A program made the position numbers and the translations under genes. The notes beneath the pieces were generated by a model. The model did no database searches, was not told the origin of the DNA, and saw nothing but the letters and a program-made list of their open reading frames with translations. From Podarcis filfolensis (taxonomy: Eukaryota), in assembly GCA_964270895.1 (NCBI GenBank), contig OZ185442.1: 64,000 nt of DNA; one strand, written 5' to 3'. Shown here in pieces: positions 51,896-64,000 of the stretch (its first letter is position 1; the number at the start of each line of letters is the position of its first letter).

Positions 51896-54800
51896 GGGGG
51901 TGAAGAAGCTCCCTGGATGCCAGCCATATTGTTTGGTGAAGAGTAGAGGGGGGGCTGCTGCAACTCTTGCTGGTTCATGCTGTTTTGCAAGGCAGACATG
52001 GAAGTCGATGATATGAAGAGGGTGACAGGTTGCTCCTGAGAACTGGAGGATCCTTGGACTAGCTGGATCTGGGGTGAGTTGTGGAATAAGGCAGGCTGCT
52101 GCTGTGACTCAGCTTGATTAGAGCCTGGGCTCTGGTTCTGAAACTGCATGGGTTGCTGATCCTGATTCATTGGTGCCATGCTGCTTTGTGGGTGGAAGAG
52201 AGACTGGCTTTGTTGTTGTTGTTGTTGTTGCTGTTGTTGTTGCTGCTGATGCTCCTGGCTGGCCATTGGGTTAGGGTTTGGGTTGTACATCATGTTCTGC
52301 TTCTGGGATGTCATAGGACCCATGGAATTCTGATTGCTGAACCTCAAATTCTGCTGCTGCTGCTGCTCTTGGGAGGGTGTGCTGTTCTGAAGAGCCACCA
52401 TAGAATGCTGTGGTTGGAACATGGCTCCTTGCTGGTTTTGGGGCACCTGTGATTGGAACATGCTCTGCTGCTGTTGCTGGGACTGCTCTTGGGCAAGCAT
52501 AGGGCTCTGGAGGTGTGAGAGCTGAGCCTGCTGCTGCTGGAATGTCGACTGCTGCTCAGCATTGGCAGATGTCTGCAGTGGAGAAATGGAATTCTGTGTG
52601 GCAAAGAAGGGCATCTGTTCCTCCTGTGCAACTGAGCTCTGGGGAAGGAATAGGTTGCTTGCCTGCTGGTCCTGAACCACACCCATGGGACTTTGGGAGT
52701 GGAACATTGGAGGCTGCAGCTGCTCTGAGGAAGAGGCAGAGCTCTGGCTGTGGAAGAGAGCACTTTGGGTCTCCTGCGAGATGTTCTGAGCATCCCCAAT
52801 AGGGCTCTGTGAGTGAAAAAGCTGAGCCTGTGAATGGGAAGCCTGCTGCAAGAAGCTTCCAGACTGGAGAGACATCAACTCCCCACTCTGCTGAAAGAGG
52901 CTCCCGGTTTGCTGCTGTTGCTGCTGTGTTCCATTGTCCTGAACGGCCATCATGCTTTCTGAGGAGGAGAAGAGGCTGACCTGCGCCTGGTTCTCCCCGC
53001 TGTGCTGCATTTGAACCATAGCTTGAAATACATTGTTCTGCATCTGTTTGGTCTGACCTGGAGCTTCTTCACCTTCGGCAGAGCCAGAAGATTGAAACAT
53101 GGAAGGGCCGTTGGCAGGCACCACCTGCTGCTGCTGTTGCTGCTGCTGCGATGGAGTACCAGCTTCATTACCAGAAACACTGGTGGGTGAGAATAGCTCA
53201 CACTGCATCTGTATGTCTTCATTTGTTGTCAGTGCACCCATCAGGTGAGAAGTTTGTTGGTACACTGGGGACTGCTGGATGTTTCTATTTCCCGAAGAGG
53301 AGGTTGAGAACATGTCAGACTGCATCTGACTTGCTGCCTGGCAGAGGCCTTGCTGAATCTCAATCACCATAGCTGCAGAAGTCTCCATTGCTTGCTGCTG
53401 CTGCTGCTGCTGCTGCTGCTGGCTGGACAAAGAACTTTCAGGTTGTGGATGGACATTCTCACTTCTCCCAGAGAGAAGGTCCTCAGCCCTTGAATGGACA
53501 GTGTCAGAGGCAGAAAACATCCCTTGGCTGACTCCATTTTGGATCTGGCTAACCTGCTGAAAAATCTCTACATTGATTTGCTCTTGAACATCCTCATTGT
53601 CAGACCCAGAGAACAAGACAGAGGACAGCTGCTGCTGGGCTTCCAGGACCTGCTGGACCAAATCTACACTTCCATGGTTGCTGCTGGCAGTGCTAGACTG
53701 AAAGTTCCCTGCTTGCAGTTGTTGAATTGTGTTCTGCAGCTGACTCACACTGCTGGCCGATGAGAAAAGGTTTGACGACATCTGCTGCTGCAACACTTGT
53801 GCCGATTCCTGGAGTGGTGACTGCTGCTGGGACGCCTCTGTCAACTGAGACAAAGTCATGACTGCACTCTCTGGCTGCAACACCTCTCTCGGCTGGGACT
53901 CCCTGGTGGGGAACTGGGATGCCTGCTGCAACAAGGTGTCACTGTTTTGCAGCTGATTGGGACCAGAACCTGCAGGGAAGCTGCCAGGCTGGGCAAGGTC
54001 CTGTGCCTGGAGGGAGGGCATTGCCTCTGGAGTATATACCTTTGGCTGCAGCTGCTGATTTTCACTCTCTGGTGCTAAGTGAGAAGCAGAAGAGGAGAAA
54101 GTGCCATTGCCCAATATACTGGACATGTTGGTTTCCAATGTGGCTTGGGGTGGTCCAACTACACTTGTTGCCTGAGGGGGAAAGCACACAGTAATAAGAG
54201 AGAACAATCATAGGCTTGCATGGTGCCTCAATGAAACAACACTCTGAAAACTGTTTAACATTTAAACCACACCAACTGCAACATTGGATCCCTATCCCAT
54301 TAAGGCATGTTGAATTTTTCAACTTAAAAATTCCAAAAATGAGGGGTGCTAAAAAGTTGTAAAATGACTTGGAAATTCAAAAGATATTTTGATTAAATTA
54401 ATATTATTTAGTTTTACTTGGCAACTAACTACATAAAATATTGACCTTTTGTTTTTGTACAACTTCCAATAATTTTTAGCTTCTTATAAAAAATATGTAA
54501 AAATGTGTGTAAAATTGAATATCATAAAAAATGATTGCCAAGTACTTGCAGTTATATATGACCCCGCATAATGGACAATTAAAAAAGCACAAGCAGCAAG
54601 AATGCGGCTTACTAAATATAAGCAGAGAAGTAAGCAGGATGCTTCAATACCATCAAATGAAATAATTTTTTTGGCTGATAGAAATGAATAATAACCAAGG
54701 TGGAAATGATGGAAGTTATGAACTGGCAATAGAAAAATCAAGTACACCTTCCACTTTGAATAAAAAGACAGAGTACAACATATTAGAAATAAATAATTTT

Positions 54801-57800
54801 GCTATGCAGGGCATTAGATATGCTGTTGACCAGCTCACCACAGCTCACCACAGATTTGTAGTTGATCACAATAAAATCAAGAGAGCCCAAGAAAAAGATA
54901 TCAAATCCCTGAATCAGGAATCTAATTATCTTTGTCAGAAAGGGTGAAATTGACTGGTTCAACATCAAAGTAAAGCACTCAATGGAAGACCCACACCACA
55001 TCTTGTTTCAGCTGCAACAAGTTAGGCTGCAAAAGAAGGCTGTGGTGGATGCTGTTTTACCAACCATTCAGCACTCAGCATGGTATGCATTTAGCAAAAT
55101 GATAATCCAGACACTCTTGGGCTCAGAGAGCAGTGGGAAGAGGAAAGCTCGTGTCTGAAAGATCATTAACTTGAGGGGTAGAGTTGATCTTTTAATAAAA
55201 GTTTTGTCAAATAAAAGTTTTGCAGAACCCCCCCCCCCAATCACCAGCTCTCTATGCCACTACTTACCTTAAAGACTGGAGGAGCCCTTTTTTCAGCTGT
55301 AAGTGCCATGGGAGCAGCCTCTTCACTCTTGATCACACTGTTTGGCCTGAGTGGCGTTATCAAGGCACTGGGAAGAATATTTACCTTGTCCAGGTTACAG
55401 CCACTGGTGTTCACTGCAGCAGAGAACAAACACAGTCTTACTGGTGTCCTGAAGGATAGCCACAGAGGCTGAGAATAAGAGGACTGGTTGCTAGGGCTAC
55501 CCCTCCACTCTCCAGAAATTAGGTTGTGAACAGCAACAAGCATCTGAATACATAGCACTGCCACAGAGAGGGTAATACATCTGGTAAAATAAGTCCCTAT
55601 ATGGCAAAGACTATACTAGTATGCTACAACAAATACAAGGCCATGTGGCAACTCACATTTGACAAAGGGATCTCAAGCCCATTATTCCACAGTAAGTGTG
55701 TTCATCTTTAAGATGCTACAAGATTGTTTTGTGAGTAATTTGATGGAAAGAGTAATCTTGATGCTTTCAGCTCTCCTTACCAAACAGGGATCTAGGAAGT
55801 TGCCTTATACAGAGTGAGACCATTAGTCCATCTACAGTACTTTAGCTTTACTAATGGTTTTCCAGGGTTTCAGACAGTAAACTTTCCAAGCGCTACCTAG
55901 AGGTGACAAGGATTGAAACTGGGACCTTCTGTATACAAATCAGATGGTCTACCACTGAGCGACAGCTCATCTTCTGAAGAGCCATAAAGTTGTTATTACA
56001 GGAAAAATCACCCTGATCTCTGATGTCCATCCATTTGCAAGCCACCAAGTTTCCCCCATTCTGTTCTTTCAAATTGCATCAGCTTTTGCCAGAACACATC
56101 AAATGTTCAACTTCTTGCTTATATTAAGGGTTTTAAGTAAAGGTGAAAGTAGTAAAATAAGGGCATGAAGGAAATAGCAGTAATTTGCAAGTGTCTTTTA
56201 TCAGCTGAAGAATAGTTTTCTATGGAAATAATCCAACAAACAACTTGTACAAGCCTGCAAGTGATGAGCACCAGTTGTTTGAGCCAAATGGCATCAGCAT
56301 TTCACTGTGACTGATGAAGCATATGTAATTAACTGCAAGAATTCCAGGCTGATACAAAGAAAGAAGAAGGGATGAATTGGGATCAAAAACATAATCCTGC
56401 ACACAGAAAAGTGGGTGAAATATTTGACTCAAAGCATAATGAAGAACAAACTGTAAGTACAACACTGCCACATTTATCATCACACACTTCATGTAGGCCA
56501 AGTCACACAATTATACTGGTCAATACATAATTTAGTTCTGGAGAAAGAACGAATATGCCCTACACATACAACAAGCCGAATGGGAAACACCCAAATGCAA
56601 AATTGAAGCCAAGATTGGAGAAGTGTCATAAATTCAATGGTAGCTGCTCTGCATGCAGAAGGTCCCAGGTCTAATCCCCACCATCTCTAGGTAGGACTGG
56701 GAAAGAATCCCGTCTGTGACTCTGAAGAACTGCTGCCAATCAATGTAGAAACTGCTGAGCTAAATCGACAAATAATCAGTGAATGTATGAGAACATCTCC
56801 TGTTCCTAGTGAGTTGGAAACATTCCAGAACAGCTATGCTGAATCTTTTCCAGCTGCAGCCCTGGAAGCCTAACAAACTCATGACCTTACTATTTATGCT
56901 GCTTTGCTTCAAAAACACATGCTCTTGAGCAGCTTCTGAAACTTAATTAGCTTCAGCAAACAATTCACTTAGTAAGAGCACACAAACCAACAGGGCCTGC
57001 CACTATAGTACACACAGAGTAGTAAAGACAACTGCAAAGCAAGTACTATGAATAATTTATTCTCTATTTTTATTTGAGTGGTGAGCTTTGCACTAGCAAT
57101 ACAACTCTTATGTCAACATTTTCATGAAACAGTTTAGCAAGTTATCTGCACTAACTTCATGTTTAGTCAGGACTTTTAACCACTTGTGGAATTAATATGT
57201 ATTAGAAACAGCAACACGAGAGTAATTGCAAGATTAAAGCCCCAGCATATACCACTGTCTCTGCGACCAGGAGTCTTAGGCTGCAATCATATGCACACTT
57301 ACTTAAGAGTAAGCCCCACTGAGCTCAAAGCGATTTACTTCTGAGTTGACATGTAAAGGACTACACTCTTAATTTGTGATCACAATAAAGCTCTTACAAA
57401 AATCTCTCTGAAAGGTCTGCAGAAAATTGGTGTAAGTTAGAACTCAAAGAGATTAATACCACTGCTAAGAATTAGATACCTTTGATAGCATCCTCAAAAG
57501 AGCAAGGCTGGGTTGGACTGGGTATTTCCTGCTTCACGTTCACATTCAGAGTACCAGCTGCAAATGCAAAAGACACTGCTGACTTTCAGAACAGATGTAA
57601 AGCAAAGTGTTCCCCCGTAAGGTGAAAGGTACATTTTAAAAGTTTATCTCTATTTTCATGTGCGCAGTGGTGGGGGAAGACCTTAACTCAGATCTTTGTA
57701 ATACAGTGTAGCCCCAAACTCATCTTCCTCCCATAAACCCTTCAAGCTTCAGAGAGACAGGCTCTCTTCAAAGAATGAGAGCAAGTCCCTGGTGTGCAGC

Positions 57801-60800
57801 TATCAGGTCAAGTAGTGCAAGAGGTGTTGCCCGCCCAACAGTCTTGCTTTCTTCCTCAGTCTCTTCCAAAGATATAACAATTAAATACAAGAAAAATTGT
57901 GCAGAAGTATTTGCCAAGGGCCATCACTACAGCTTCATCATTTTCAACATACATGTATCAGGAGTGTAAGTAAATGGCTGTATGTCATGTGATCTTCCAG
58001 CATTGGTCACCACATAGATCCCCACAGAAACCGGGGAAGTTATTTGCTGGTCGTGATATGGCGGCACCTTCACAATTAGATGATTCTAAATCCAAAAAAA
58101 AGAAGTTTGTTAGAGCAGACACCTTACCAACTTATATCTTCACAGACTAACACTACAAGACCTAATCATATGAAGTAAAGATTGCATTGGAGGTACCAAG
58201 GATCTGCTGGGAAATCTACCCAGCTACAAATTGTAAAGCTGAATCTCTTGAACATACCTATCAGTAGCGAGAGCACACAGGAGAAAAGTCTTTACTCAAC
58301 ATAATCTTCCTATCTCTGCTATTACAATCTTCTTAATTTCAGAAAACCTGCACATAAACAGCAAGTCACTGTTTCCTTGTTTTGCTTTGCTATAGCTTCC
58401 ACTGCTCATCCACCAAAATGCCAGTCAGGGACTTAGGTTGTGCAGTGGCAGCAATGAAATAACTACAGGGAGGTGATTTTGAGGTTCCGCAGCAACTAGT
58501 AGTATTCAGAAGCAGACCAGAGGTAGTATGTAGCCACAAATAACCTTATTCTCCATTAATTTGTCTAGCCTCCTTTTAAAGCTGTCAAAGTTGACAGCCA
58601 TTACCACATATTGTGATATGAAATTCTATAGATAACTTTGCTGGGGATGGGGAGGCAGACATAATACCCAGCAGTTTATCTGCATTATTTGTGACTAAAT
58701 CGAAAATAATTTCCTCAACCAACAAAAACATAGGCTCAATTTATGATCCATGATAACAGCAGGTTATAAAATTACCGTATTTTTCGCCCTATAGGACGCA
58801 CTTTTTCCCCTCCAAAAATGAAGGGGAAATGTGTGTGCGTCCTATGGGGCGAATGCAGGCTTTCACTGAAGCCTGGAGAGCGAGAGGGGTCGGTGCGCAC
58901 CGACCCCTCTCGCTCTCCAGGCTTCGCGCACCTCTCCGCAAGCAGCGGGAGCCCAGTGCTGGGCTCCCGCTGCTTGCGGAGAGTTGCCTGCACGCTGATC
59001 CGCAAGCAGCGGGAGCCCAGTGCTGGGCTCCCGCTGCTTGCGGAGAGTTGCCTGCACGCTGAAGCCTGCGCGCGCTGAGCTCAGCGCATCCAGGCTTCGC
59101 AGACCTCTCTGCAAGCAGCGGGAGCGCTCCCGCTGCTTGCGGAGAGTTGCCTGCACACTGAAGCCTGCGCGCGCTGAGCTCAGCGCGCCCAGGCTTCGCG
59201 GACCTCTCCGCAAGCAGCGGGAGCACTCCCGCTGCTTGCGGAGAGTTGCCTGCACGCTGAAGCCTGCCCACGCTGAGCTCAGCGCGTCCAGGCTTTGCGG
59301 ACCTCTCAGCAAGCAGCGGGAGCCAGCGCTGGGCTCCCACAGCTTGCAGAGAGCTGCCTGTTTGGGGGCTGGGGTCGGGGGAAGCTCGGGCTTCCCCTGC
59401 CCCAGCCCCGCGCCTGGGGGGGGAAAATAATTTTTCCCCTTTATTTCCCCCCCAAAAAACTAGGTGCGCCTTATGGGACGGTGCATCCTATAGGGCGAAA
59501 AATACGGTAAATCATAGCCAGAAATATTGGGAAAACAGAAATATTCTGTTTTTAAGTAGTAAATAGCATATGACATATATGCAAAATAGAAAAGTAATGA
59601 TATCTTTATTTGGGTACTTTATCATCACAGAATCTTATAGAAATAATTAATAGTAACTTGGTCTGTTTGGTCCTGGTAGGAGTTGTAGCCAAACAACATC
59701 TGGGGACCCAAGGTTGAGAAAGGTTGCTCTAGATATTTTTCCACTCTCAACTGTATTTACCCTAGATTCTTAAAAACATAATCACCACCTTGCTGGATCA
59801 GACATTGACCCAACTAGTCCAGCAGCCTGTTCTCACAGTGGCCAATCAGATGCCTCCATGGGAAGCAGGGCATGAGCACAAAAAACATGTTATATGGTTA
59901 CCTATTTTTTTTTTAAAAAAGTTTCAACAATTTTATCTTTGTTTTTAATTAATGATGGTATTATGTATATTTGTTTTTATTGGTTTGTGGATATTAACCA
60001 TGCTTTATATATAATTTTATTTGTATACCACCTGGAAAAAACTTTGATCAAGCAATTTGTAAATTTTCTAACTAAATAAAAGAAACAGTACTTTCACCAA
60101 CCACCTTCTCCAACAACTGGTAGTCAAGAGGCATGCTGCCTCTGATAGTGAAAGAAGTAAACACCCATCATAGGTGGTACCCATTGATAGGCTTATCCTC
60201 CATTAATTCAAGAAATCATCATCACCAAATCATTTTAAATCCATAAAGTAGCATTGTAAAAGGAGAGAAGATATTAAGATTCTAACTTTACGGATTCAAA
60301 ATGTTTTGGTGACAGTAAGATTTCTTGAAGGAAGAGATAATTAATGCATATTTAACCCTAGTGCAACAATGGATTTGGGTTTGGATTCCCATCATTAGAA
60401 GACTAGAAGAGAGTTAACCATTATTTATGGCAGTCCTTATGGTAGCAGCTGCACAAAAGCCAATTTTTTATCATCCTACTTCCAAAATGACGGTCAGCAC
60501 ACCTAGAAGAGGAATGACTGATTGCTGCCTGCACAGGAACCTTTGCTGTTCTGTATCTCACAAGCAGGGCAGAGGCGGGAATTGAAGAAAGAAATTGCCC
60601 TGATAAACAGAACAAGTATAGTGCTCACTCACATAATCTCTATGCTTAAAGGCTGCAATGGCTACCACTATACAAAAGAGGAGAGACTGCTTAGGTTGTG
60701 AAAAAATGTGAAATGTACCACAGTCTTGCAGCTCGGGTTTAAGGAGTAGGGAGTAAGAGAAGAAATGACAACTTTGTGCAAACTATTTGTACACACACAA

Positions 60801-62716
60801 AAAGGTGACCCAGCCAGATACTATTTATGTCAAAATATCTGTCCATGAAGATTGATCCAGTTTGTTGGTCATATGATTGTTTGACAAAAAAAATAAGCCA
60901 CATGAAGGCAGCTTTTGTAGCAAATTTACCTTTTTAAACTTGGGCATAAAGTGCTTGGAACTCGTATTTCAACTTCATATATGCTTTCTAAATCCTCCCT
61001 TCCAAATATATGATAAGAGGAAAAATTCTTTAGCAATTCCTCACGCATAAATGAACAACTGTATCCCAACTATGAACAAGGAAGATTTTATATCTGGATT
61101 TCTGTGCATTTTTAAAAAGCATGTACCTGATGAAACAGCTCCATGTCAATTTCTGCTTCCCCTTTCCAAGAGTTTTCATCTGTTTGAAAGCAAAAGAGAG
61201 TAGAATTACTGCACAAGCTCAGCTAAGTTTATTCATTGTCAGGGAAGCTGGTCACAGGAACCACCTACCTCCTTGGCTACCTGCAGAGGCAGTCGTTAGC
61301 CCAACTCCATCCACAATGGTCTCCCCACCCCTCACCTCCATTCTCAGCCTGAGTATGTATGTATAGTTCTCACCAGACATATTCTCTTGAAAGATCACTT
61401 TTGTTCCCTTCAGAAAGTTCTTGCCAATTAAAAAGACTTCCTCTTCTCCCTTCACAGAACAACTGTGCAGGCTTTTCTTTAGAATCTCTGGTACACCAGC
61501 TGGCTGAGCTACAAATTGAAAAAGAGAAGGGATATTTATTATATACACCCCCACACCTGCAACTTAATGCCAAAATGGGCTTCTAAGTGGTTTAACTGAC
61601 AACATGCAAAAAGTTGGCATCATCTCCCAAGGTCTCAATCTGGAACTGGTCATTTGGCTTGCATGGCATATAGGAAAGCAGAACTTACAGCGATTCTGCT
61701 TGGGTGTAGCAAAGCATGCCCATCCTTTAATTCATCAGAGAAAAGCACAGCACAACTCTCCTAGGAACTGGCACATGACTGTAGTCTACTAGAATATGTT
61801 CATCATAGCATTTCCCCCCTAGGTAACACTGAAGTAAAATACCACTAGTTCTCTCTTTTATAAATGGGCTAGTGCAAGGAGTTTCAAAAATCAACCAACT
61901 GTCATATACAACATCTTAGAGGCCTTTAAAATTTGTCTCACAACAAGGTCCATAACAATTGGCTGGACATGTACATACAGTCTTCAGCAAGTTTCCAAAT
62001 ACAAATAAGCTTTATATCAATATTACACAAAAGTTAGTCATTTTGCCCAGATGCAAAAAGTTGGCATTTTAAACACAACTGTAGTTTTAAGCCTCAAGCC
62101 AGCAACAAATAATTCAAACCACAGAAGCAGGCTATCTCAGGCTAGAAACAGTAATTTTCCTTTGCCAAAGTCCTATGATACATGCCACACTCCTATTCCA
62201 ACTATGTGCACTGCTTGGTGGATTGACGGGGCACACTGTTAATTTGGATGTAGGCCAGATCCCCTACACCCAAGTTTTGGTTAACACTGAAAATAGATCA
62301 ATGAGGGAACCAATTAGATATGCTATAAGCCTACACAGAAAAAGTAATTTCATTAAAGCAGCATGAGGACTCCTAGCAACACAGACACACATGAAAGCTA
62401 AGGTCTAGGCAATTTATTTGGTTTATTTGGGTTGTTCATTCTATTTTGTTATTAAAGCAGAAAATGAAATGCAGGGCAACTGAATTAACAGGAGACCCAA
62501 AGCCCCAGCAAGATGGGACTCAGAGTTTGACTTTACAACTTACTGCACAGAATTGGTGAGGACGGCGTCTGCAGGGTCAGTATGGAACCATCCTTCCGAG
62601 TGATGTTAACACGGAACACTAGCCTGGCCCGAGTGCTTTTTTTCTTGGAGCCAGCGATGCCTATTCGAGCTTCAACATCTGCATTTCTCAGTTTCAGTAT
62701 TCCAACACAGTCCACC
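50762..62716 (-). CDS. NFAT5: NFAT5 (TonEBP), Rel-homology tonicity-responsive transcription factor; 5' part outside the window
   Basis: In-frame exons 62544-62716, 61374-61508, 61127-61179, 57953-58085, 57480-57557, 55268-55413, 51744-54171, 50762-50994. RHD-C/IPT sequence [36 protein letters not shown]...[34 protein letters not shown]; Q-rich TAD; ends GNNNMAGSF*. Confidence 0.97.
51744..54171 (-). CDS. NFAT5: NFAT5 large glutamine-rich exon (2428 bp)
   Basis: Lies within the 832-aa ORF; ctcag|ATSVVGPP...FLFGIQD|gtaagt. Confidence 0.96.
51853..51894 (-). repeat. NFAT5: Pure coding (CAG)14 polyglutamine repeat
   Basis: 14 uninterrupted CTG triplets on the plus strand; protein SPP-Q14-AALF. 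Confidence 0.95.
55268..55413 (-). CDS. NFAT5: NFAT5 exon 12
   Basis: tgcag|(V)[48 protein letters not shown]|gtaagt. Confidence 0.93.
55795..55965 (-). mobile_element. tRNA-derived SINE, near full length
   Basis: Minus strand: gctcagtggtagaccatctg...ggtcccagtttcaatcc...tctgaaaccctgga...gatggactaatggtctcactctgtataaggcaacttcct. Confidence 0.7.
56632..56810 (+). mobile_element. tRNA-derived SINE
   Basis: tcaatggtag...tgcatgcagaaggtcccaggtctaatcccc...ctgctgccaatcaatgtagaaactgctgagcta. Confidence 0.7.
57480..57557 (-). CDS. NFAT5: NFAT5 exon 11
   Basis: ttgcag|(S)[25 protein letters not shown]|gtatct. Confidence 0.92.
57953..58085 (-). CDS. NFAT5: NFAT5 exon 10
   Basis: tttag|[44 protein letters not shown]|gtatgt. 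Confidence 0.95.
58490..58635 (-). mobile_element. CR1 3' fragment
   Basis: cttattctccattaatttgtctagcctccttttaaagctgtcaaagttgacagccattaccaca, antisense to the 38360-38440 sequence. Confidence 0.6.
58775..59507. mobile_element. Non-autonomous Tc1/mariner-superfamily (Tc2/pogo-like) MITE, 733 bp, with an internal palindrome array
   Basis: 27-bp TIRs CCGTATTTTTCGCCCTATAGGACGCAC / GTGCATCCTATAGGGCGAAAAATACGG (26/27 match); TA target-site duplication at 58773-58774 and 59508-59509; no transposase ORF. Confidence 0.9.
58868..59353. repeat. GC/CpG-rich tandem array of alternating palindromes (99-bp period)
   Basis: Hairpin A (ctctccgcaagcagcgggagc...gctcccgctgcttgcggagag) occurs five times; hairpin B (gaagcctg...gcgctgagctcagcgc...caggctt) starts at 59061, 59160 and 59259. 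Confidence 0.92.
59790..59880 (-). mobile_element. CR1-type 3' tail fragment
   Basis: gctggatcagacattgacccaactagtccagcagcctgttctcacagtggccaatcagatgcc. Confidence 0.65.
61127..61179 (-). CDS. NFAT5: NFAT5 exon 9
   Basis: aacag|(D)[17 protein letters not shown]|gtacat. Confidence 0.95.
61374..61508 (-). CDS. NFAT5: NFAT5 exon 8
   Basis: tgtag|(T)[44 protein letters not shown]|gtgaga. Confidence 0.96.
62544..62716 (-). CDS. NFAT5: NFAT5 exon 7 (RHD)
   Basis: gctag|[57 protein letters not shown]|gtaagt. Confidence 0.96.
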
Positions 62717-64000
62717 CTAGCAACACAAGATTAAAGTTACCTACCCAACTTGCTTTCAAAGAGGCCACTTAAGTTTTGCCAAGGTATGTAAAACAGCAAG
62801 CTTCCTAGGTCTCCAGGCACATGGGTATTTAACCCAAGCGAGAGTTGCCCATATAAACACTACAGATGCATGTGCCTCTACAGCTGTAAAGATGATGGAA
62901 GCAGCCACAAAAAGCTCCCTCGCCTCCAAGCTCTGCAGCAACAGCTACTGTCAAAAGAGCAAGCCTTAAATTGGAGAGGGGTGTGTGCTAATACCTCTGC
63001 TAAGTCAAACAGTCACTTGCTGGCCTTGGGAAATTCATTTTCAGTCTCTCTCCACCTCTCCCATAAAAAGGGGACACAGCAGCTTGCCTACTAGGTGTGT
63101 TAAGAGGATGGGCAAGCAATCACTTTGCATGTAATTCAAGGTAGCTAAAATGTTCTTTTAAATGTGTTTGTGAGAAGGGGGGTATTGGTTTTTTGTTTTT
63201 GTTTTTATTATGTATTTTGTGTTTTCAATTTCTATTTTTATGCTGCGAACTGCCCTGTGATCTCTGGCTGAAGGGTGATATACAATTTTTTTTTTTAAAA
63301 AAAATAATCTTAACTACGGAAGTGTGAAATCCAAAGGAGGCTGCTTTAGGCAAAGTTTATTTGGCTTCCATGCAATGTGCCTCTAACAAAGAACAACTGC
63401 AGGTGGGTTCTTAAACCTATAAACAAATTTCTTTGGTATAATAGTTTGAAAATAGAAATAATTTTAAGCTTTGTCATGCAACTGGCACAAAAATAAAAAC
63501 AAGAGCCATGACCCAAGAATCCTCAACAATGGCCAAAATAAGCAATTTGTATTATGGCCAAATACTTCCAAAATATTTTTTCAGAAACTAAAATAACCAC
63601 CTAAATGCTACCTCCCCATAACATTTGTTATAAAATGCATTCATCCTAAATATTCAGAGAGAGTTGGCTAATGCATTCAAATATACCAGAAGGGAAAATA
63701 GCATCTTTAGAGAAAAGCAAAAGATGGCAGTAGCACTTCATATTCAGCTGAGGCATCAGTAGCTCACAGATCAGATTTGGTGGCAGACAAGGAAGAGCAA
63801 TGAATCTGGACAACCCAATTATGCTGGCTGGCTGAGTGCTCATCACTAGAGCAACCAGTCACTATTCTGAGACTCTTTTGCATCTCTCGCTTGCATAAAG
63901 CAAACAGAGAAAACAATGAACTAAGAAATCAGTTCGTCAATGAAGTGAAAAAGTTTTTCAATTCAAATTATTCTCTCTGGTTCCCAGAATATCCATTCTG

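Follow-up and report, generated by a model that had tools for sequence, protein, structure and literature searches.

The 64,000-nt stretch of Podarcis filfolensis DNA analysed here (contig OZ185442.1 of assembly GCA_964270895.1; hereafter the window) carries a 733-bp GC-rich element in an intron of NFAT5, at positions 58775-59507, whose interior is built almost wholly of palindromes. This element is most probably a young and passive copy of a transposon family of the Podarcis lineage, a Tc1/mariner-type family of transposable elements of the miniature inverted-repeat kind (MITEs) that duplicates a TA target site, is probably Tc2-like and carries a GC-rich palindromic minisatellite. Judged by sequence comparison, the NFAT5 element is probably an ordinary member of a multi-copy family, and the family is of an already known kind, the tandem-repeat-containing MITEs.

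The ends of the element are well defined. The dinucleotide TA stands immediately outside each end, and the 27-nt terminal inverted repeats (TIRs) at 58775-58801 and 59481-59507 are identical at 26 of 27 positions. No further match to the TIR at up to three mismatches was found in the 64 kb or in 100 shuffled sequences, and the window contains no other copy of the TIR, the inner TIR or hairpin B (described below). The element has a GC content of 0.64 and an observed/expected CpG ratio (CpG o/e) of 0.75, and the corresponding values for its 566-bp interior (58855-59420) are 0.69 and 0.70, compared with a GC content of 0.39-0.40 and a CpG o/e of 0.13 in the flanks. None of the open reading frames (ORFs) of the element contains a Pfam family; they are low-complexity sequences read through the array, and the element is therefore non-autonomous.

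The interior combines two palindromes, hairpin A and hairpin B, in a tandem arrangement (Table 1). Ten hairpin A arms make up five hairpins, in a long and a short form, the long tip holding a 10-nt palindromic segment that is absent from the short one. In the minisatellite, each 99-bp unit joins a 42-nt short-form hairpin A through a 13-nt linker to a 38-nt hairpin B, with a further linker of 6 nt after it, while the perfect 64-bp duplication carries two long-form hairpins A (58928-58987, 58999-59044) without a hairpin B between them. Folded singly as DNA, the hairpins have energies between -11 and -37 kcal/mol (z between -3 and -11.6). The centres of the three hairpins B (59073-59086, 59172-59185, 59271-59284) present a 12-nt palindrome, GCTGAGCTCAGC, which may resemble a recognition palindrome of the MAF/bZIP type.

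The original prediction, made from the letters of the window, had described much of this anatomy, and its coordinates and counts for the element are all correct. This holds for the 27-bp TIRs with one mismatch, for the TA target-site duplication directly beside both ends and for the CpG-dense 733-bp body within an AT-rich intron. It holds equally for the five hairpins A, including the one at 58932-58983 (perfect 25-bp arms, 2-nt spacer) and the 30-bp palindrome at 59111-59140, which has no spacer, for hairpin B at an exact 99-bp period (starts at 59061, 59160 and 59259) and for a G/C hairpin placed near 59365-59410, which folds at 59365-59409 with -25.5 kcal/mol. The proposal of a non-autonomous TIR element with a TA duplication is supported by the same ends and by the lack of coding capacity. 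Two features had been overlooked, namely hairpin B', the largest perfect palindrome of the element, and the subterminal inverted copy at 58835-58853 that pairs with the left TIR.

Other copies were traced with the spurious long ORFs that are opened by the GC-rich array, which were run against protein databases. The 183-amino-acid (aa) ORF at 58792-59340(-) matched three P. lilfordi entries named "hypothetical predicted proteins" (P0001-P0003); P0001 used as a query brought a fourth (P0004), and a full HMMER search a fifth (P0007). The array was found in this way at at least five other loci of P. lilfordi, since these five entries, including CAI5785754.1, CAI5782967.1 and CAI5780182.1, each lie on a contig of their own (sizes 71.8 Mb, 2.9 kb, 41.6 Mb, 85.0 Mb and 89.6 Mb). 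A period of 33 residues, equal to 99 nt, is clear in P0001 and P0004, and the number of units is about seven in the former and about four in the latter, versus three in the NFAT5 copy. P0007 displays a long-form hairpin A followed by hairpin B in a unit of about 109 nt, and adjacent long hairpins A also occur in P. lilfordi ORFs. No Pfam family was detected in the P. lilfordi read-through ORFs, and the five entries are almost certainly translations of the minisatellite and not proteins.

The left end of the element recurs in a second species. In the HMMER search, the ORF at 58775-59005(-) matched two UniProt gene models of P. muralis: the last 57 residues of the PBXIP1 model A0A670JKW4 (P0005) match 58945-58775(-) with 84% identity, and the last 33 residues of the SUSD3 model A0A670HP62 (P0008) match 58873-58775(-) with 79% identity. 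Both matches extend to the final base of the TIR, the stop codon being provided by the TA flank, and hairpin B' is present in the PBXIP1-associated copy too. When only the left-end portion of the 183-aa ORF was used in a word search limited to 100-320 aa, nothing was returned; the models came from the full HMMER search. Every related protein that was found belongs to P. muralis or P. lilfordi. As judged from these matches, the backbone of the element, including B', and its array each recur at several other loci in two Podarcis species.

These copies modify the original idea of an insertion carrying its own expanding minisatellite. The unit number does differ among copies, but the 99-nt unit is found at at least five P. 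lilfordi loci and the backbone at at least two P. muralis loci, so the array is not the private property of the NFAT5 insertion. Conversely, an array already carried by the family at a fixed unit number had been named as the outcome that would speak against that idea; this outcome was seen by half, as the family does share the array, yet in varying numbers of units. Regarding the remaining matches, P0006 is a 537-aa ORF on a 326-kb ENA contig, with a 64-residue period and weak similarity (37-45%) to the left-end ORF, which is probably another GC-rich tandem repeat and whose relationship to the element is doubtful. It was set aside together with P0009-P0011 from the HMMER search as unrelated repetitive proteins. 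The TIR had no match in metagenome or viral contigs, and a 19-mer of hairpin A gave one exact match in each of three large IMG/VR viral contigs (L001-L003), which was taken as chance.

The substitutions within the array bear on its age and on the way it decays. Of the 11 differences that separate the three 99-bp units, seven are CpG transitions, and across these units about 10% of the CpG positions have changed versus about 2% of the others (Fisher p ~0.005, in a small sample). The sole mismatch between the TIRs is of the same type, and the centre of the long hairpin-A tip has also undergone a CpG-to-TpG change. Considering these CpG-dominated differences together with the TIR mismatch, the array decays like methylated DNA and not like a protected CpG island, and it would be ageing as methylated, unconstrained DNA. 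Because CpG transitions dominate the decay, the high CpG content probably reflects youth instead of protection. The NFAT5 copy looks young, since its TA flanks are intact, its TIRs agree at 26 of 27 positions and its CpG o/e is 0.75, in agreement with the recent insertion that had been proposed. The notion of a "portable CpG island" stands as far as composition is concerned, whereas the dominance of CpG transitions, in this small sample, bears the mark of germline methylation. Furthermore, the fifth hairpin A has acquired uncompensated changes, and these mismatches suggest that there is no local constraint on the hairpins.

The two copies in the 64-bp duplication are identical, although a divergence like that among the units would predict about four differences, and the duplication is therefore newer than the 99-bp units. 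Perfect tandem duplications and palindromes are prone to assembly and polishing errors, and the contrast between 100% identity in the 64-bp copies and 5-7% difference among the 99-bp units might also be taken to mean that the element is real but that its internal unit number and order, the 64-bp duplication especially, are an assembly artefact of the palindromic repeat. This explanation appears quite unlikely. P. lilfordi ORFs such as P0007 likewise show long hairpins A side by side and further unit forms, the substitutions in the array are ordered and unit-specific as in real sequence, and the window contains no N bases and no sign of a gap.

The near-perfect symmetry of the hairpins raises the question of whether selection maintains them. 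The tip of the short hairpin A is read as R-E-R-S in the window versus R-Q-R-C in all seven readable instances of P. lilfordi. By codon logic, this difference corresponds to G to C at stem position 12 together with C to G at its partner position 4'; it can equally be described as the loss of two symmetrically placed stretches of 5 nt from the long form, and the symmetry is kept either way. A difference that separates subfamilies while preserving symmetry, the symmetric 10-nt segment by which long and short tips differ, and palindromes that stay near perfect despite ongoing CpG decay would all fit hairpins that are functional for the transposon family, as binding or processing sites for mobilisation or for escape from silencing, with selection among master copies keeping the palindromes.

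This functional explanation is nevertheless improbable. For Tc1/mariner transposases, the TIRs are known to suffice. Units differ freely in number and in form (64, 99 and ~109 nt), decay in the fifth hairpin A goes uncompensated, and the tip difference is one shared event and not repeated covariation. Moreover, template switching between the arms of quasi-palindromes makes paired changes in a single step and both creates and maintains perfect hairpins without selection (PMC8794818), so that the paired tip changes are not by themselves evidence of selection. Another stem pair, 3:13', which is A:T here versus G·T or G:C in P. lilfordi, was rejected as evidence for selection; both of its positions lie in mirrored CpGs, and it is uninformative because independent CpG decay yields a compensated pair half the time. 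The wider proposition that the palindromes are held perfect by selection, be it for the element (mobilisation, or a hairpin or small RNA modulating its own silencing) or for its hosts (terminal exons), has a similarly small chance of being right.

With regard to classification, the TIRs and TA flanks would place the element, as a non-autonomous MITE, in the Tc1/mariner superfamily. TcMar-N4 and TcMar-N6 of Anolis have TA duplications and TIRs starting with CYGTAT or CCGTAT, and N4 resembles the Tc2-related frog element DNA5_Xt (PMC3014272). Like the NFAT5 element, TcMar-N4_AC and TcMar-N6_AC of Anolis carolinensis have a squamate host and a TA duplication; their TIRs, of 23-25 nt, have a similar start, and their length is 400-660 bp. 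In contrast, only the first 6-7 bases of the TIRs agree, and the description of the Anolis elements, on which this comparison is based, contains no internal palindromic minisatellite (PMC3014272). The Tc2/pogo-like affinity put forward in the original prediction is accordingly plausible by its CCGTAT start but shares no more than these 6-7 bases, and the element probably belongs to a Tc2-like group. The inverted repeat reaches 30 nt at 97% once the flanking TTA/TAA is counted. A PIF/Harbinger origin with a TWA duplication was rejected, since TTA and TAA do not repeat one another directly.

As for the internal array, MITEs containing tandem repeats are known from bivalves and insects, in which each core repeat contains a palindrome that is proposed as a hotspot of array change (PMC3879986). 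The NFAT5 element has the same layout, a central array between TIR-bearing modules with a unit number that varies among copies. DTC84 of Donax trunculus and the pearl and DINE-1-like elements are likewise non-coding, use flanking modules with terminal and subterminal inverted repeats as a cassette for a central array and vary in copy number, but they have an AA putative duplication, a microsatellite tail and cores of ~160 bp, and are perhaps related to Helitrons (PMC3879986). The lizard element, unlike these, has TA flanks, 27-nt TIRs and a 99/109-nt unit made almost entirely of two GC-rich palindromes. Its membership in the pearl/DTC84/DINE-1 group was rejected, the flanks being TA instead of AA and a tetranucleotide microsatellite being absent, and the likeness is one of analogy only.

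Xenopus offers vertebrate examples in miDNA4, a Tc1-mariner MITE whose interior holds a satellite, and in the Xmix/Xstir system, both listed in PMC9659126. These are likewise non-autonomous elements of Tc1/mariner type with a tandem-repeat interior; as far as could be judged, their sequences are unrelated to the lizard element. For the growth of such a repeat, a stem-loop-driven replication model was proposed by Hikosaka and Kawahara, as cited in PMC3879986. Long satellite arrays of the lizard unit were not seen, in searches that were not capable of showing them. Foldback transposons such as Tetris of Drosophila virilis share TIRs, internal tandem repeats able to seed satellite DNA and strong self-complementarity, but have long inverted termini made of repeats (PMC4079207), whereas the lizard element has short TIRs, differing subterminal regions and one polar direct block. 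A foldback origin was rejected, considering that the halves are not mirror images and that a single direct array is spaced by asymmetric 13-nt and 6-nt linkers.

Several points weigh against a young, passive Tc1/mariner-type MITE copy. No autonomous partner came to light, so that the superfamily assignment draws on the TA flanks and on 6-7 shared terminal bases, and where flanks are AT-rich a TA duplication says little. That backbone and array go together at other loci is judged from the NFAT5 copy, the left end and the array having been seen separately elsewhere. Germline methylation is read from the substitution pattern. Finally, the short tips differ at two exactly paired positions, which selection on the stem would also explain.

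The host gene, NFAT5, lies on the minus strand and was recognised by two ORFs, one at 61255-61554(-) matching residues 168-224 of PDB 1IMH and one at 57930-58073(-) matching residues 243-281 (E = 1e-19). Between the two lies a 53-nt exon (61127-61179(-)) that is too short to appear in the ORF list. The intron carrying the element spans 61126-58086 (3,041 nt). The distance from the element to the acceptor (58086/58085), upstream of which it lies, is 689 nt, which agrees with the value of about 690 nt given originally, and the donor is 1,619 nt away. Over the window as a whole, the GC content falls markedly, from ~0.51-0.58 at 1-26000 to ~0.39-0.40 at 54000-64000.

An effect on NFAT5 itself could arise through long double-stranded RNA in the pre-mRNA (leading to editing, small RNAs or altered splicing of the exon downstream), through a cryptic or terminal exon, or through a regulator resembling a CpG island. 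For the strand of pre-mRNA sense, the whole element folded as RNA has a predicted energy of -583 kcal/mol (z = -36), and the interior has the composition of a CpG island. In addition, two P. muralis models, PBXIP1 and SUSD3, terminate inside copies that they read in the same orientation as NFAT5 reads its own; the element may truly have been recruited there as a terminal exon, or the annotation may be at fault. In the right subterminal region, the minus strand at ~59414-59431 contains a 15-nt pyrimidine run followed by CAG, similar to a 3' splice site.

Such a host-level effect is nonetheless very improbable. The Rfam search gave 121 matches, all below the gathering scores, the best reaching 68 bits against a threshold of 268. 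Because these matches are sub-threshold and mirrored on both strands, they amount to generic hairpin resemblance. GC-rich stems with loops of 0-4 nt and few adenosines are poor substrates of both Drosha and ADAR, and the hairpins of the element fit this type. The suggestion of a Drosha or ADAR substrate found no support beyond predicted folding, the microRNA matches being far under the gathering scores and equal on the two strands. The CpG-biased decay argues for methylation, and the distances to the acceptor and donor fall outside the usual range of splice signals. Nothing points to any function at the NFAT5 locus, and the element is probably passive.

Table 1. Positions of the element, its repeats and the adjoining NFAT5 exons in the window
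Feature	Position	Strand	Evidence and remarks
Left TA target-site duplication	58773..58774		Read from sequence
Right TA target-site duplication	59508..59509		Read from sequence
Left TIR, 27 nt, begins CCGTAT	58775..58801	+	Exact match here; match with 1 mismatch on the other strand at 59481-59507
Right TIR	59481..59507	-	Sole mismatch is a CpG-to-TpG change
Left-end hairpin: inner TIR pairs with inverted subterminal copy 58835-58853, enclosing a small T/C-G/A hairpin	58783..58853		-28 kcal/mol, z = -7.9
Hairpin B': perfect 58-bp palindrome (29+29 nt, no spacer), stem base as in hairpin B	58868..58925		100%; -37.1 kcal/mol, z = -11.6
Perfect 64-bp tandem duplication	58935..59062	+	Tandem Repeats Finder: period 64, 2.0 copies, 100%
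99-bp minisatellite, 3.0 units, 93-95% identity	59027..59323	+	Tandem Repeats Finder: 99 bp x 3.0 at 93%
Hairpin B, copies 1-3	59061..59098, 59160-59197, 59259-59296		Pattern search and folding
Short-form hairpin A, copies 1-2	59105..59146, 59204-59245		Inverted repeats and folding
Fifth hairpin A, long form	59303..59353		2 mismatches in right arm; -17.3 kcal/mol with bulges
G/C-run hairpin	59365..59409		-25.5 kcal/mol, z = -6.0
Right subterminal region, unlike the left; G/A-T/C runs; inner TIR repeated in direct, degenerate form at 59462-59480	59411..59480		Sequence and folding
NFAT5 exon downstream of the element	57954..58085	-	1IMH residues 243-281; acceptor AG at 58087-58086
53-nt NFAT5 exon upstream of the element	61127..61179	-	Between the FQEN exon and the element-bearing intron

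These results suggest a possible history of the element, whose superfamily, array mechanisms, youth and passivity we infer from the features described above. The basic unit would consist of hairpins A and B on asymmetric linkers, occurring as forms of ~109 nt (long A and B), 99 nt (short A and B) and 64 nt (long A alone), and the array would move together with the element. At the hairpins, slippage during replication or unequal exchange may alter the unit number, while intrastrand template switching, and not selection, would uphold the symmetry of the arms. A copy would then have inserted at a TA in the NFAT5 intron, the perfect 64-bp duplication being either acquired thereafter or inherited, and this copy may now be decaying as methylated, functionless intronic DNA.

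The single NFAT5 copy matters little in itself, as a young and probably passive transposon copy within an intron. If selection did maintain the palindromes, the copy could give rise to a truncated isoform or to effects of structured RNA, and the PBXIP1 and SUSD3 models would hint at the donation of terminal exons. For annotation, caution is called for, as the array opens long spurious reading frames, now present in databases under the name of hypothetical proteins, and the left end terminates two gene models. The family, however, provides a clean vertebrate case in which a palindrome-built minisatellite is carried and dispersed by a MITE. Considering that its unit variants of 64, 99 and ~109 nt differ by symmetric changes, the family, once its copies are gathered genome-wide, could be a natural test bed for how template switching and slippage shape palindromic repeats and for how transposons seed tandem repeats.

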